Positions 50,811 to 64,000 of a stretch of DNA of 64,000 nt are shown in pieces. Origin of the DNA: Piromyces finnis finn. Taxonomy: Eukaryota; Fungi; Neocallimastigomycota. The DNA is taken from the NCBI GenBank assembly GCA_002104945.1, contig MCFH01000022.1, positions 248,001 through 312,000 of the forward strand. Reading direction: 5' to 3'. A program made the translations under genes and the position numbers. How positions within the stretch are numbered: position 1 is the stretch's first letter; every line of letters starts with the position of its first letter. The notes under the pieces were generated by a model. The model had not been told where the DNA came from and did no database searches. It was given only the letters and a program-made list of their open reading frames with translations.

Positions 50811-53576
50811 ATGACCAACTTCAGTGATTTATCATTAGATTCAAGACTTTTAAGAGCTATCAGTAAGCTTGGTTACAAGGAAGCAACCCTTGTTCAAGAA
50901 AATACTATTCCATTAGCTTTATCAGGAAAAGATATTTTAGCTCAAGCTAGAACTGGTTCAGGAAAAACTTCAGCTTATTGTTTACCAGTTATACAAAAAA
51001 TCATTTTAAGTAAAGAGGTAATATACCCTACCACATATACTATATATATAATAATATATATATATTTTCGAATTATCAATCATAAATATAAATATAAATA
51101 TAAAAATGAATAATATAATATTATTTTATTAAAAATTGGTGAAACTATATTATTGTGTTTTAGTATTTTATTCAACTATTTGAAATTTGTAATTTGAATT
51201 TTAAAATTATTTAAATTTTAAAATTAATAAAATCTAATTTCATTACTATTTTAAATATTTATATTTAAATTAATAAAAATAGTTATTACCAAGTAATTCA
51301 AAAGAACGTAACAATGTTAGAGCTATTATTTTAGTTCCAACCAGAGAATTAGCTGATCAAGTACACAAGCATATTAAGGAATTAACTATTTATTTACCAG
51401 ATATTACTTCCATTAACATTTCTTCTGGTGAACAAAGTCAAATAAAGTAATTCTATATATTATTATTAATAACAAAAATTAAAATAGAACCAATCGAGGA
51501 CTAATAAAATTAAATTTAATTTTTGAAATTATACCATTTATCCTTTTTTCAAATTTAATTAACAAATAAAAAATAAAAGCTCTTTATTATCAGAAAAGCC
51601 AGATATCATTGTTGTTACTCCAAGTCGTATGCTTAAACAATTTGAATTAAAAGTAAATGTCTAAATAGTTATATATATTTTATTTTAATCCAATTATTAC
51701 ATTATGGATTAGCTTTTTCTCAAACATGACAATATGTTATTTGTTTTAAATTGAAATAATTTTAATTTTATAAAATGATATTAAAAATAAAACTTATTTT
51801 TATTATACGTAATACTATATATAGAATGTCGAATTAAATGAGGCATTTGAATCATTTGTTATCGATGAAGCCGATTTAATTGTTTCTTTTGGTTATGATG
51901 AAGATTTAAGAAAAATATTAAACTATTTACCAAATCTCTATCAAAGTTATTTACTTAGTGCTACTGTTGACGCCGTAAATATTTTCGTCATTTATATTAT
52001 ACTAAATTATATTTATACAACGTTATCATATTTTACTATAATATTAAATATTTATAAATTATATAAATATATATTATTATTATTATAAAAGGATGTTAAT
52101 GCTCTTAAACAAATTGTTTTAAGAAATCCAGCTGTATTAACTTTAAAGGATGAAGAACCAGAATCAAAATTAACTCAATATTATTATAGGTAAAAATCTA
52201 GAAATAATTATTATCCTATTTAAATTCATTATCGATATTAATAATAAAATATCGGTTTCATTTCAATAATAACAATAATATACCTATCCTAACAAATCTT
52301 TTTTATTTGATATTATCAATTATAACAAAATTAAAATAATAATAATAAAATAAAAAAAGATGTACCGATAAGGAAAAATTCTTACATGTTTACTTCTTAT
52401 TCAAACTTAAAGTTGAACCATTTGGATCACATAAAACATTAATTTTTGTCAATGATATTGATAGATGTTATCGTTTAAAACTTTTCTTGGAACAATTTGG
52501 TATTAGAAGTTGTGTTTTAAATAGTGAATTACCAGTTCAAAGTCGTATTCATGCAGTCGAAGAATTTAACCGTGGTATGTACAATTATTTAATTGCTACT
52601 GATGAAGCCGGTGATATTAAGGGTAAATCTAAAACTCAAAATCCAAAGAAAAATGAAAAGAAAAAGTCTGGTAAAAAGAAGAGTGATAATGAATATGGTG
52701 TTTCCAGAGGTATTGATTTCCAAAATGTTAAGGCTGTCATTAATTTTGATTTCCCAGAAAGTCAAACTTCTTACATGCATAGAGTTGGTCGTACTGCTAG
52801 AGGTGTAGGTAATGAAGGTTTCTCTTTAAGTTTTATAAATACTGATAATAAAGTTAATGATCAAGAAGAAAAGGTTTTCAAAGAAGTCGAGGAACATTTT
52901 GAATGTAAGTCAATTATACGAATTTTTTTTTTTCTTTACCTTTTTTTTTTTCTAATCTATAAATCAATATTAATTTTATTTATCCATGTTTTTATATTTT
53001 CTCCAAAAAAAATAATAATTGTTATTGTATATATAAAAAAAATAATGGAATATTAGCTGTCAACCAACAATTATTACCATTTGAAATTGATAAAAATGCT
53101 ATTGAAGGTTTTAGATATCGTGTCGAAGATGGTATTCGTGCTGTTACCCGTGTTGCTGTTCGTGAAGCTAGAATCAAGGAATTAAAATCTGAAATTATTA
53201 CTTCCGAAAAATTAAAGGCTCACTTTGAAGATAATCCAAAAGATTTACAAGCTCTTCGTCATGATAAAGCACTTCATACTGCTAGAGTTCAAGCTCATAT
53301 GAAGCATGTTCCAGATTATTTATTACCAGATTCTGTTGATGGAGAAAAAATTAAAAGTCAAGCTGGTCCACAAAAGGTTTATTTCAAAAAACAAAGATAT
53401 AACCCACATAGAAGAAATCAAGTATGTATCAATTAAAAAAATAATACTATTTATATCATTAAAAAAAAAAAAATTCTTTTATTAATATTTTTTAATTTAT
53501 TTATTTCTATATTATATTAATGAAATATTAGAAAAAGAAGTCAAACCCATTAACTTCCTTCAGTTACATGCAATAA
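50811..53576 (+). CDS. DBP9: ATP-dependent DEAD-box RNA helicase Dbp9/DDX56, about 8 exons
   Basis: Motifs [31 protein letters not shown] and HRVGRTARG, plus the Dbp9-type C-terminus [25 protein letters not shown] and HVPDYLLP. The last exon is 53532-53576. Confidence 0.95.
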
Positions 53577-56349: not shown

Positions 56350-58078
56350 ATGGATAATATTGAAGAAAATATTAAACTATTAATTAATAAGGATAAACAA
56401 AGCCATGCCAAAAATATCAATTTGATAGATTTATTTATAAATTATATTCCACTTTCATCCCCTGAACAGACTACAAATCCATATAATATTCAAAAATTAC
56501 TAAAAAAGGACTATGAAATAGAAAATGTTGACACTTCTTATTTTCATTATATTAATGAAAATTTAAAAAATATAAATATAAATATTGTTGGTCGTCCTTT
56601 CTATCGGCAAACACATGATATAATAAATTGTAATAGTCAAAAGGAAACATTATCTAAATATTATCAATTTATTGTATCTTCTGGTCAAGAATGTTATCAA
56701 TTTTTAAATAATTATCCTCTATTTAAGCGGGCTTCTCTTCAAAAACCATTAATACAAAAACGCGAAAAAATTGAATATATAACAGCATTGGTAAAGTTAA
56801 AAAAAGAATTTTTTTTTTTTTTTTTTTAAATTCTTTTTAATTGCTCTATATTTATAGTTTATATTTTCTTTCTTTCTTTCTTTCTTTTTTATTTCTTTCA
56901 TTATTTAATATTATTAGTATAATACAATATTTTATTGTAGAACTATTATAATCAATCTATTATTTATTTATATTACCCCGTTTATTAATATGAAATAGTT
57001 GTAATTGTTTAAAAAAAAAAAAAGGATTTTTTTTTATAAAAAAATTTAATAGTAATTATTACTTCTTTTTATTTTAGTTTAAAGAATATTAGTTTTTCTT
57101 TTTTTTTTAAAAAAAAATAAAAACTATTACACTATTCTTTTTTGATATGGTGTTAATTTTATATATACCTTGTTTAAATATTGAATTATTTAGCCAGTAT
57201 CTGAAAATTCGAAAAAAGATAAAAATTTTTTAAAATATGAATTGAATCCATCTGGTAAAGAATTTTTATTGAAAACTAATAAGAATATTAAAATTTCCAC
57301 AATGAAGGTTTTTATTTCTACTTTTGTTCTTTATTATTAATAATTATATTATTATTACTACTTTTTATAGTAAATCATGCTTAATTTTTTTTTCTTTTTT
57401 TTTTTTTTTTTAACTTTATAATGAAAAATATTAATTATTAACAAAATAATTAAAGTTATTCTATACACTAGATAATGATGCACTAAGAATGTTTGAATTA
57501 AATGAAAATGATATTACATTTAATAGCTTTATTGTTAGTATTGATGTTTATATAAAATATCTTTCAAATATAATTATTACTTTGTATCCAGTTAATCTAG
57601 TAAAATTAACTTCAAATTTGAATAACTATGGTCAAAATGAAGAAAAAGAAGAAGAGGATTTAGAAGCTACATTAGTAAATAAAAAAAGAAGTTATAGTGA
57701 TATAAATAATGGAAATAATTCATCAATACTAAAAAAGGTAAAAATAGAAGAAAATGGAATAGGTATAAAAGAAGGGGGGGAGATCCAAACATTAGAAAAA
57801 TTAAATTTAAAACAAAAACCTCCCCTTCTACGAATTATTGATAACATTTTTAATGTAAATTATTTATCTCTAAATGATTTACCTTTTTCAAAAATTTGTA
57901 ATCATGGTCAATTACTTTTTATGAGAGAAAATGAAGAAAAAGATCAATATTTATATATTTTTTCTAGTGACTTTGCATTAAATATTGCGTCTCAATCTTC
58001 CTATTTTGATTTAGGTAAGAATAATTAAAATAAAAATGGTTGGAGTTTATAATATTTTATTTAATTTTTTTTAAATTT

Positions 58079-58113
<35 letters not shown>

Positions 58114-60060
58114 TTTTAAAATGTTTTATTATTAAAAAAAAAAAAAAAAGATATAAAAAATAATTATGTCCATAAAAATAAATATAAATTCTATTTTGAT
58201 TACTACAGTATTAGAGTCTTTAGTAACGATAGTATAGATAACTCATATGATTATTATGAAAACTATTTCTTAAAGAAAAACGATAAAACTAAAGTTCTTC
58301 AAAATACAAGTATTCCAGTTATTTATGCGCTCAGTAGAAACTTGAGTTCTTCAATAACATTAAAAATTATTTTATTTGTTTTAAGAATGAATTTGAATTA
58401 CACTAAAAAAGGAAAATATTCATCATTTTCGACTTCATCAGCTAATTCATTTTATACTAGCGATGGAAAGGACATCAAAGAAGATTTATCTTTTAAATTT
58501 AATGAAAAAACAGGATTAAGTTTTTTAAATGGAAAATATTCATCCGAACCATATCATTATTTATGGTTAAAAGATGATTTTATAAGTCATCCGTCTACTC
58601 ATTTTCAACATCAAGATAATAAAAAATATGGTAATGATAACATAAACAATAATGAAGATGAAAAGGATTTATTTGCATCATCATTACATTTTTCAAATGA
58701 AAACCTTGATGCGTCTATGACCAGTTATGATATAATTCGATTTAATGATAATAACTTTAATTCCCCTAATAATAATGAACTCCATCTAACAATTCCTATT
58801 AATAATAATGGAAGGACATCAATTAAGGATTATACAAGGGAAGAGACAACTTCGAAAAATAAATTATATTTATTTATGAAATCAACAAAAAAGTTTATTG
58901 CCACTTCCTATCAAATGGATTTCGTTCCTATAATATCCATTAACTTTTTTATGAAATCTTTGAAGCAAAGAATTATTCAATTTATCAATCAGCAGCTTTA
59001 TACTTCATCTTCAGAATTTCTTACTTTTTCTCGAAAATTTAATCATTTAGATCATCAAAATTCACTAACCTATCATGATTTTATATGTATACCAAGTATA
59101 ATGTTTGTACTTGCAGTTAAATTATATTATATTCATCCATCTCCCAAATCATTTGCTCTTATTCGATTATTATTAATGATCCATATAAAAAAACAAACAT
59201 TTTTAAATCCATCCATTGATAATAAAGGTAAAAAAAAAAAAAAAAATTAAAACATGATTAACTCTTTTATTTATTTAATATAAAAATATATTGATTACAA
59301 CAACAATAATAATATATATATATATATACTATTTGTCAGATTATAACTTTTTTGTTCAAGCATTGGATGAATTTTTTAAAATGATTAAAGAGATGTGGGG
59401 TTCATATTATGAGGATGAGATTTTAAATAATAAAAATTACATTATTCATCCTCAACTTTATAATAGAAAGCCTCATAAAGATCTTCAAAATATTTTCCTT
59501 AATAAAACTAAAAAAACACTTTCTTTTCGTTCCTTTATTAATATTTTATTTGGTGATGAAATAATTAAATATTATAATGGTAATTTAAAAATTATAATTT
59601 ATGTAATTATCTATTATTCAATAATTTTATTAATAATTATTTTGTTGTTAGAACCTTCATCTCATGAAATAATTCTAGGTAAAGATCAAGATGGTACAAT
59701 TCAAGTTACAGATAAGAATGAGAGAAAATATATTGAAAAAAGTCCAGATAATTATGGAATTGAAGATAAAAAATCAATCTTTAAATATTTTTCTACACTT
59801 TATACAAATCATTGTTTAGCAAATTATTTATTGAAGCAATGTCGTCTCAATCCTACAGCATCATTCACTTTAGGATCTCCCCAAAACAATAAATCGAAAA
59901 AAAAATATGGTAATAATCCTCCTGTTTATTATCAAGGAATTTATTTATTTTTAAGTCGTAAGGTATAGATAAAACATATTGTTTAATAATTATTATTTTA
60001 TAATGATTTATTATTTTTTCATTCCATCCATTATTTTCATTATTAATAAATTTAATAAAA

Positions 60061-60096
<36 letters not shown>

Positions 60097-61497
60097 AAAT
60101 TTATATAAATTAAATAGATTAAAAAATTATATGTTGAAGATATAAACAAAAAATTGGATTATTTTTTAATTGAAGATAATTTTGAAATTTTACAAGTTAT
60201 TGAAGAAGATGATGATATCGAATTAGAAAAAGGAATAATAGACATTTACGAAAAAATTGATATAAAAAAAGAAAATATTGGAAAAAAGGAAAAAAGAAAT
60301 GAACCTGATCCTAAAGTATCCCTTAGAAAAGCTTGTTCCCCTTTAACAAAATCGTTATTAATACGAATCTTTAGACCTTATATTATTCATCTATTTGATA
60401 TCCATTGCCAGTGTATGTATTGTTGTCAAAATCAAACATTAAATAAAAATCATCATAGTCATTCTAGCCATTCTAATTATCATCAGCATTATATTTGTGT
60501 CAATCAAGTTATGAAATATTTACTCTCTGCGTCATCAATATCATCCTCTTCACCCTATGTTCTTTTAGAAAAATATAATAAAAAAATTGAAAGTCTATAT
60601 GTTAAAAATGAATTCGTTTCTTCACCTACTACTACTCCATCAAATTCTCATAGATATAACCATTTTTTTTCTCTTGAAAAAAAATGGAAAAAATGTGTAA
60701 AAGAAAGAAAGATAAATGAATTTTTTTCTAACCCTCAATTTTATGATATGAATTTAAAAGAGGAGAAAGCAATTCATGATAGTATCACCTTTTTCCGGAA
60801 ATATAAAGCGGTTGTTTTACAAAAATTAAATGAAGAAGCAAAAAGTTATTTATCATCAATTCAATTATCATCATCATCGACATCATCGGCTCCCACAACT
60901 TCAACGACTGCATCATTAATTCCATCGATTACTTCTTCCTCTGATAAATCCGTGAAGGAAACACAAGAACAGCGATTTATTTGTCGTATTCCAAGCTTTT
61001 TAAAAAGAAATATTAATCCGCAATTAAAAAGTAATGAAATTAATTTTAAAATGATGTTAAATGAATTTAATAGAAACCGATCGGAATATTGTTGTACATG
61101 TTATGTAAGTCTACATAAATTAGTAAAAGAAATCATCAAAACAAAACAAAACTTTTCAATTATATTAATTAATTAATTAATTTTATATATATATATATTT
61201 TTTTTTTTTTTTTGGTTATTATTTATCTTTTAGGACTATTTATATCATGGTGGTCATTATCTTTGTAGACATATTATTGCAGGACAATTGAATAATATAT
61301 ATGAAAAACAAAAAAGCAGGGGTAGAAAAGGAAATACAAGTACCAGTACAATATCTCATTCTCAATCATTATTATCATCCTATCCTTCTTCTAATGCTAA
61401 AATGTCTTTACTAGAAATAAAACGAAGTAAATATTCTACTACCAATCCATTCTTAAAATTATTACAATTACAATTATTAAATATTATTAAACATTAG
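56350..61497 (+). CDS. Intron-containing Mutator (MULE) transposase-derived protein with C-terminal SWIM zinc finger, probably domesticated
   Basis: Eight frame-consistent exons can be built: about 56350-56790, 57194-57254, 57472-58014, 58238-59227, 59340-59579, 59652-59962, 60118-61104, 61234-61497. MULE-core-like segments appear in the expected order: LYIFSSDFALNIASQSSYF, IPVIYAL, MDFV, LDEFFKMIKEMW, TNHCLAN. Splicing yields the SWIM motif YCCTCYDYLYHGGHYLCRHII. Confidence 0.7.
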
Positions 61498-62426: not shown

Positions 62427-64000
62427 TTAATTTAATACGGTGGCCGAAGTAGTCTCTTCATTTGTTGAATTTATTATGTCGGTTGTAATATCGGAAGAAT
62501 AGGGAATAGGTTTCATGGTATCGAGATTTGTAGAGGATGAATAATTTTTGGAATTAATTTGTTTGTTGTTGTTGTTGGAGTGATGTTGTTCTTCATTGCC
62601 ATCACATTTTTTTTTAAACTTTTCTAATATTTCATTGAAAGTTACATTACTACTTCCACCATTTTTATTAGATATATCTGAATTATAAATAATATGACGT
62701 GGACCATACTCTTTTTGTAAATCTGATAATGTAATATTATCATTATCTGTATTACAATTTCTTTGGAATTGCTTTAAAAGATTTTGAAAGGATTCACGAT
62801 GATGATGACTACTATTGATGTTTCCATTTAGATGATGAATAGGATAGTTTGGATAGGATATATAGCTCAATGGATTATTTAAATCTACAGAACCTCCCTT
62901 TTTTGCAAAGGAGGCATAACTATCATACTGAGTATTACGAGCTTTGTCATTGTCACCATTCAAATTACTATTTTTATTATGGGATGATTTAGATAAGGTA
63001 GGTGAAGAGTTTTTATTAAATATATCATTGGTAGAAGGATCATGATTTCTATATGAAAGAGATGAGGATGATGAGGATGATGAGGATGATGAATAATTAC
63101 AACTATTTTTAATTTTATTATTTAAAATTTGATGATGCACATTCTTTGCATTGTTTTCATTATCAAAGACTAGTTCTTTATCACAAAAATATTTATTATC
63201 ATCATCAATGTAGCCTTGACAATCATAATCAGATTTGTTGGATGAATATGTAGGAGATCCTGCTGAAGCAGTAAATTTGTTAAGACAATTTTTTTTATTT
63301 ATCTTTGACTCATTCTTGTATAGCGTGTCATTTTTTTTATTTTGAATTATTATATTCTTACCTTCTTTATCCAAACTTGTATGATAATTATTTTCATTTG
63401 TTTGATCACGAAGATAAACGTTACTCTCAGTATCCATGAGTACTTCGGTTATTTCTTCTGTGCAATTTTGACTAATATCTTTCTTTGATTCAAATGTTTC
63501 AATTGGATATTCCTCTTTCTCAGTTAAATAGCTGTCGTTTAATCTTCGTGTATTATAATAATCTGAAAAATTTTTACCTTCTTTTTTCTGTAAATCCTTT
63601 CTGTCTGTAAACGCTATTTTCTCTACTTCAAGCTCGGAATGTTTAGAAGGACTTGATATAGCACTTTTACCATCTTTAGCCGAGGATGAAATATCGGTAG
63701 ATGGAATTGAAGTAATAAAAGAAGAAATATTAGTCATTTCTCCTTCTTCATTTGATACTTTTGAAAAATCTGCATTAATTGTTTCATTTTGTTGTTCAAG
63801 GAAATTTTTTATATTATGAATTTCATTTTTATATTCATCTGTATTACTATCGCCACATAATTTATAATTTTTTTTTTGTCTAACTAATTCGGACTTTGAA
63901 GGCAATATTAATGATGACTCATTATCACTTTGGTCATTAGTTGCCTTGTAATAATTTTTAAGAATATTTATATTCTTGGCATCTTGCTTTAAAAGATTAG
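62427..64000 (-). CDS. Low-complexity Asn/Ser-rich protein, 3' portion (frame open to the window edge)
   Basis: The ORF 62427..63905 stays open upstream to position 64000. It has poly-Ser and His/Asn-rich tracts and no recognisable domain. Confidence 0.6.
   Translation of the reverse strand, partial: NLLKQDAKNINILKNYYKATNDQSDNESSLILPSKSELVRQKKNYKLCGDSNTDEYKNEIHNIKNFLEQQNETINADFSKVSNEEGEMTNISSFITSIPSTDISSSAKDGKSAISSPSKHSELEVEKIAFTDRKDLQKKEGKNFSDYYNTRRLNDSYLTEKEEYPIETFESKKDISQNCTEEITEVLMDTESNVYLRDQTNENNYHTSLDKEGKNIIIQNKKNDTLYKNESKINKKNCLNKFTASAGSPTYSSNKSDYDCQGYIDDDNKYFCDKELVFDNENNAKNVHHQILNNKIKNSCNYSSSSSSSSSSSLSYRNHDPSTNDIFNKNSSPTLSKSSHNKNSNLNGDNDKARNTQYDSYASFAKKGGSVDLNNPLSYISYPNYPIHHLNGNINSSHHHRESFQNLLKQFQRNCNTDNDNITLSDLQKEYGPRHIIYNSDISNKNGGSSNVTFNEILEKFKKKCDGNEEQHHSNNNNKQINSKNYSSSTNLDTMKPIPYSSDITTDIINSTNEETTSATVLN

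Follow-up and report, generated by a model that had tools for sequence, protein, structure and literature searches.

The question raised by the locus at positions 56350–61497 (forward strand) of a 64,000-nucleotide stretch of Piromyces finnis DNA (hereafter the window, i.e., positions 248001–312000 on a contig of the 56.46-Mb, 232-contig assembly) is whether its disconnected open reading frames encode a single protein and, if so, whether that protein is a domesticated Mutator (MULE) transposase with a SWIM zinc finger, as a first-pass annotation had proposed. We found that the open pieces join as a single gene of eight exons, seven GT-AG introns, and 1330 codons, and that this is a lineage-restricted, conserved host gene of anaerobic gut fungi (Neocallimastigomycota). 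At the C-terminus of the product, a SWIM-type zinc finger is convincingly predicted at the level of the residue pattern. Mutator descent, in contrast, was not demonstrated; it is plausible but unproven, and we rate it a little above even. The proposal of a domesticated transposase was therefore upheld in its host-gene half by copy number, orthologues, and the ratio of nonsynonymous to synonymous substitution rates (dN/dS), whereas its Mutator-derived half stands at the level of a lead from the ESM Atlas, with profile searches negative and the AlphaFold models too poor to use.

Gene structure and the C-terminal finger

The composition of the locus is very AT-rich, with a guanine-plus-cytosine (GC) content of 12–29%. 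By exact look-up and mapping back onto the window, exons 1–6 were found to be identical to the public entry ORX49979.1 (hypothetical protein BCR36DRAFT_62468, Piromyces finnis, 915 residues). This public model terminates at 'gta tag' (59963–59968) by reading through the donor of intron 6, and it is thus truncated by about 416 conserved C-terminal residues (exons 7 and 8, 60118–61497), among them the SWIM finger, the one motif that can be recognised in the protein. For intron 6, the phase-0 donor (GT directly after 59962) pairs with a phase-0 acceptor (AG directly before 60118), and intron 7, which is 129 nt long, has a phase-0 pair as well (GT after 61104 and AG before 61234). The first-pass annotation had read the disconnected frames as one spliced protein with seven introns, and this reading holds, with a length of 1330 residues in place of the roughly 1280 claimed. 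Four public runs of the same organism contain 55–73% of the sampled words of the locus, which comes near the exon share of 0.78; such a word share would fit spliced transcripts and, hence, possible expression.

Across intron 7, the product reads C-T-C-Y on the exon 7 side and D-Y-L-Y-H-G-G-H-Y-L-C-R-H-I-I-A-G-Q-L on the exon 8 side, i.e., CxCx11CxH. The earlier claim that a CxC...CxH finger appears upon splicing of 61104 to 61234 was therefore borne out, and both the finger and the intron within it are kept in two metagenome contigs, L003 and L013. Indeed, CxCx11CxH and its flanking residues (G-H-x-L-C-R-H-I-I-A-G-Q-L) are invariant among the three taxa covering the finger, namely, the window, L003, and L013. 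By chance, only 0.0018 CxCx11CxH sites would be expected per protein, given a product of 1330 residues with 18 Cys and 36 His. By analogy with its pattern, the finger would be expected to bind zinc. When the genome was searched in six frames with the SWIM profile (PF04434), nothing was returned at this locus; one sub-threshold match was seen elsewhere, at G000:C1:498919-498993 (L014; E 0.21, 17.6 bits).

The finger is preceded by a second cluster of cysteines at 60390–60510, within exon 7. This cluster, CxCxYC...(H)xxC..QVxKxLLS, has four Cys that are invariant in three taxa, and it matches no Pfam family; it may be another zinc-binding module. Exon 7 itself (60118..61104, +) encodes 329 residues outside the public model and opens at a phase-0 AG followed by ATT AAA in three taxa. 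Its conserved blocks are IKKLY..YFLIxDxF, LLIRIFxPYI, the Cys cluster (CxCxYC...C..QVxKxLLS), EKYNxKIExLY, and RFICxIP, and its last residues, CCTCY, form the first half of the SWIM finger. Exon 8 (61234..61497, +; 87 residues and the stop) supplies the second half, DYLYHGGHYLCRHIIAGQL, and then a conserved tail, LExKR..Y...PFLKxLxLxLL.

Orthologues, selection, and host-gene status

A word-based protein search with exon 4 recovered three orthologous metagenome open reading frames with 46–54% identity. The exons recur in unchanged order on the metagenome contigs L003, L004, L009, and L012 and on the more distant L013; among these, L003, L009, L012, and L013 are collinear with the gene at ~42–62% amino acid identity and represent at least four other taxa. 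The orthologue-bearing contigs are AT-rich (GC 18–24%), L003 covering the complete gene and L013 the part that starts inside exon 4 and runs to the end of exon 8. Introns 3, 6, and 7 interrupt the same codon positions wherever a contig covers them, and the reading frame is open in all five taxa. Using the Nei–Gojobori method (NG86), dN/dS was 0.20–0.55 for every exon and pair tested (0.55 for exon 7 and 0.32 for exon 8), values that are only rough since synonymous sites are nearly saturated and the AT bias is extreme. We also analyzed copy number: exon 4, exon 7, and a profile of residues 299–470 each match one place only in the 56.46-Mb genome. For the copy-number, orthologue, and dN/dS parts of the check that had been suggested for the locus, these results give a single-copy gene, orthologues in at least four other taxa, and a rough dN/dS below 1. 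Word-based searches with exon 7 and with the 915-residue protein gave nothing new, low-complexity words having swamped the candidates, and a related-locus search of the metagenome contigs yielded 95 pattern matches, none of which was confirmed.

Several differences among the orthologues were also seen. The L003 gene has an extra intron (L003:6663-6892) between '...KNNE' and 'DINF...', where exon 7 of the window is continuous (61020–61030). The L003 orthologue further contains a run of ~37 glutamines, while L013 has Asn-rich stretches of hundreds of residues. The extra intron and the Gln and Asn stretches indicate that introns have been gained or lost and low-complexity tracts expanded in this family. 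From exon 3 on, L004 matches L003 with an offset of 456 bases; it has no match to exon 1, exon 2, or the last two gene pieces, so that the L003 and L004 assemblies differ at both gene ends.

Could the locus instead be an ordinary or decaying copy of a Mutator transposon? Such a copy would account for the motif resemblance described below, and for nothing beyond it. Against it stand the single copy, the seven introns at conserved positions, the frame that is open in all five taxa with a rough dN/dS of 0.2–0.55, and the fact that the MULE family is undetected in the genome. The hallmarks of a transposon were likewise not found at the locus, be they terminal inverted repeats, an 8–11-bp target-site duplication, or multiple copies; in the flanks, the sole inverted matches are poly-T/poly-A runs, in agreement with the absence of terminal inverted repeats reported in the first reading of the sequence. 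A decaying transposon was therefore rejected on its single copy, missing terminal inverted repeats, conserved introns, and rough dN/dS below 1, and we regard a transposon copy of either kind as highly improbable. Conversely, the general features of a domesticated gene are all present, i.e., the gene occurs once, lacks transposon ends, has orthologues in several taxa, and is under purifying selection, and the status of a host gene rather than an active or decaying transposon is well supported.

A different objection to the gene model is that two adjacent genes have been joined, one encoding the 915-residue protein (exons 1–6) and a separate one bearing the SWIM finger (exons 7 and 8). The end of ORX49979.1 at 59968 speaks for this arrangement, as does the fact that the 59962/60118 junction and, more generally, the predicted exon 6-7-8 splicing rest on cross-taxon comparison. 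However, IKKLY, with which the conserved part of exon 7 begins, directly follows an AG and lacks a preceding Met in the window, which indicates that exon 7 is internal and not the start of another gene. Moreover, three taxa share the phase-0 positions of the GT after SR(K/Q) and of the AG before IKKL, and the annotated stop, 'gta tag', is the intron donor itself. We thus consider two separate genes unlikely, and a single spliced gene is retained in what follows.

Evidence for and against MULE descent

All the motif strings that had been quoted as landmarks of a MULE core are present in the locus, and the conserved blocks follow the order expected for such a core and then the SWIM finger. The first landmark lies at the end of exon 3 (57456..58014, +), which encodes residues 186–371 and the first base of the Asp372 codon and has a G/gtaag donor in four taxa. 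This terminal block, QLLFMRENxEKDQYxYIFSxxFALxxASQSxYFDL, is 66–79% identical in the orthologues. Exon 4 (58151..59227, +; residues 372–730) starts within the split codon of Asp372 and contains FDYYSI(R/K), PVIYAL, a helix (SSxxLKIILFxL), SYQM(D/N)F, and a conserved helical block with LLRLLLMIHIKKQ at its end; its variable Ser/Asn-rich stretch also holds the conserved blocks YHYLWxKDDF and YDxIRFND. In exon 5 (59340..59579, +; residues 731–810), FFVxAxD...IKEMWG...IIHP...SFRSFxNxLFG is conserved, and in exon 6 (59652..59962, +; residues 811–914), the last exon of the public model, KSxFKYFSTxYTN...PxxYYQGxYLFLSRK. The conservation of the landmarks is uneven: YxYIFSxxFAL..ASQSxYFDLD, FDYYSI, and PVIYAL are strongly conserved in orthologues and SYQM(D/N)F less so, while the quoted strings MDFV, LDEFFKMIKEMW, and TNHCLANY vary, with only the IK(E/S)(M/I)WG part of LDEFFKMIKEMW and only the YTN of TNHCLANY being conserved.

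Of the would-be catalytic residues, the candidate first Asp (in YFDLD; the Asp372 codon that spans intron 3) is invariant. The candidate second Asp (MDFV/QMDF) is Asn in four of five taxa (P0001, P0002, P0003, and P0005), and the candidate Glu position (in TNHCLANY) is occupied by A/T/A/T. No CxxH motif follows the candidate second position either, in line with the apparent loss of the third catalytic Glu and of CxxH noted at first sight of the sequence. An Asp-Asp-Glu (DDE) triad with a C/DxxH motif is thus not present, two of its three catalytic positions being not conserved, and, if the alignment is right, the protein cannot be an active DDE transposase.

Positive evidence for MULE descent came from the ESM Atlas, queried with residues 299–470. 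With language-model features, all named neighbours (0.88–0.89) were ZSWIM1-3_RNaseH-like or MULE clusters. With structure, six of ten distinct neighbour sets were MULE, ZSWIM1-3_RNaseH-like, or FLYWCH-MULE, at template-modelling (TM) scores of 0.48–0.51 over ~105 residues. The stretch concerned is the one that had been chosen from motifs in the first-pass annotation, and it includes the terminal block of exon 3. When exon 4 alone served as the query, no usable match came back. As the sole positive line, the Atlas result suggests a lead for MULE descent and does not amount to a finding.

A larger body of observations weighs against MULE descent, together with the two altered catalytic positions. 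Within the Atlas result itself, the evidence is weak by the tool's own calibration, with a shared-feature count of 136 (below 170) and a TM score of ~0.5; the predicted local distance difference test (pLDDT) value of the underlying ESM model is 0.33, and both searches count as one source. Pfam hmmscan, at E ≤ 10, found no MULE, ZSWIM1-3_RNaseH-like, Transposase_mut, or SWIM domain in the 915-residue protein, in ten sub-regions, or in single exons; for SWIM (PF04434), the intron splits the finger, and neither half alone gave a match. Neither NCBIfam nor PHROGs returned a match, and PDB sequence searches with protein and profile were also negative. When the genome was searched in six frames with PF10551 and PF00872, no MULE was detected at the locus or anywhere else; the corresponding search with PF21056 found nothing in the genome, a result that is uninformative since control genomes were silent as well. 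Against 1.84 billion representatives, a HMMER profile of exon 4 matched four proteins only, all of them orthologues or the protein itself.

Structure prediction was of little help. AlphaFold2 was run on residues 299–915 and 299–470 with few orthologue pieces as the alignment, the exon 5-6 rows being excluded owing to misplacement by MAFFT, and both models were unreliable (pLDDT 39 and 46, respectively). A fold search with the second model did not rise above noise, the best Atlas rows containing no MULE and one IS1380 DDE transposase at a TM score of 0.44, and the PDB fold search with the same model gave a best match of Z 4.4 and no MULE. The landmark strings do occur in the proposed order, but the claim that they amount to a MULE core was not confirmed, as no profile method detects a MULE. 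Membership in the MULE, PF21056, or FAR1 family is not established.

These negative results are what would be expected if the gene encoded a lineage-specific SWIM-finger host protein without transposase descent, in which the MULE resemblance arose by chance or composition and the finger independently. This alternative also accounts for the lack of a MULE source element in the genome in the PF10551 and PF00872 searches, and it is helped by the Atlas calibration, in which one third of shuffled proteins gave the outcome of all ten neighbours in the same clan, by the tool's caution that a TM score of ~0.5 on short stretches means little, and by the fact that the motifs of the first-pass annotation had been named without database searches. 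However, six MULE-labelled sets out of ten on a motif-chosen stretch, combined with a SWIM finger in canonical order, seem to us too many for a coincidence. Furthermore, eukaryotic SWIM fingers that lie C-terminal to a large alpha/beta region are mostly MULE-derived, as in FAR1, MUSTANG, and ZSWIM1/3, which we counted against an origin without a transposase. We therefore treat such an origin as a possible but somewhat doubtful explanation. It is the Atlas lead on the motif-chosen stretch, together with the SWIM finger in canonical order, that places MULE descent slightly above half.

The reading we modestly favour as a whole is that of a 1330-residue, probably nuclear, non-catalytic protein of gut fungi, which would carry a C-terminal SWIM-type zinc finger preceded by the second conserved Cys cluster. 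Residues ~300–460, perhaps to ~900, would most likely be a diverged, catalytically dead RNase H-like remnant of MULE or ZSWIM1-3 type, extended by long low-complexity inserts. Such a protein might bind DNA or other proteins and act as an adaptor or regulator, by analogy with FAR1/FHY3 or ZSWIM1/3, a function that we infer from the likeness of architecture. Whether the gene records an independent, old MULE domestication in Neocallimastigomycota appears to us evenly balanced; the product would then be a dead SWIM-finger protein with an added Cys4-type module, conserved across genera, diverged beyond profile recognition, and a fungal counterpart of FAR1/FHY3 and ZSWIM1/3.

Comparison with known systems and neighbouring features

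A close parallel is offered by the animal host proteins ZSWIM1 and ZSWIM3 (PF21056 and PF04434), in which a MULE-type RNase H-like region is followed by SWIM, the same order as proposed here. Clusters bearing PF21056/PF10551 are also the named nearest Atlas neighbours of residues 299–470. In contrast to ZSWIM1/3, the P. finnis protein is matched by neither of the hidden Markov models PF21056 and PF10551, is far longer, contains large low-complexity inserts and an extra Cys cluster, carries its finger at the extreme C-terminus, and is found in gut fungi only.

In plants, FAR1/FHY3 and MUSTANG are MULE-derived, single-copy, intron-containing host genes that encode transcription factors with a core followed by SWIM (PMC6446971). 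The P. finnis gene resembles them as a single-copy, intron-bearing gene under selection with a proposed core-then-SWIM order. Unlike FAR1/FHY3, its product has no N-terminal FAR1 domain and no detectable sequence relationship to them: residues 1–372 gave no Pfam match to a FAR1-type (WRKY-GCM1-type) zinc finger, and in exon 1 the window and L003 share a single conserved Cys. The FAR1/FHY3-like architecture that had been suggested thus stands for domain order and fails for the N-terminal DNA-binding domain. Exon 1 (56350..56790, +) begins at the ATG, encodes residues 1–147, ends at a GT donor, and is 62% identical in amino acids to L003; no known domain was found by Pfam in its conserved N-terminal block. 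The small exon 2 (57194..57307, +; residues 148–185), with AG/GT borders, is conserved in L003 and L009.

Among fungi, the passage of PMC4629796 that cites Barsoum et al. 2010 describes alpha3 of Kluyveromyces lactis as a MULE-family transposase gene in mating-type switching. With alpha3, a MULE-family gene that works for its host has a precedent in fungi. The alpha3 protein is reportedly still a nuclease/transposase at MAT; since two of three catalytic positions are not conserved in the P. finnis protein, DNA cutting of this kind is unlikely here. Autonomous fungal MULEs (Hop, Mutyl, and MULE-Mucorales) have terminal inverted repeats of 22–99 bp, 9–10-bp target-site duplications, usually one or two open reading frames, and many copies, and in MULE-Mucorales (Mucoromycota), the DDE core is combined with a SWIM finger (PMC6446971). 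Such elements may be the ancestral source, although the P. finnis locus shows none of their repeat, duplication, reading-frame, or copy-number features.

If MULE descent is true, the gene would represent a further independent recruitment of the transposase-plus-SWIM module as a host gene, after the recruitments of MULE-related genes in plants (FAR1/FHY3 and MUSTANG), animals (ZSWIM1/3), and yeast (alpha3), and it would do so in an early-diverging fungal phylum in which gene regulation has hardly been studied. The family also illustrates how homology can be masked from standard profile methods by extreme AT bias and low-complexity inserts.

The gene is flanked upstream by an intron-containing DEAD-box RNA helicase gene, assigned by motifs (50811–53056, +), and downstream by a 492-residue Ser/Asn-rich open reading frame (62427–63905, −). 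Within the gene, a TTTA-type simple repeat occupies 58051–58138 of intron 3.

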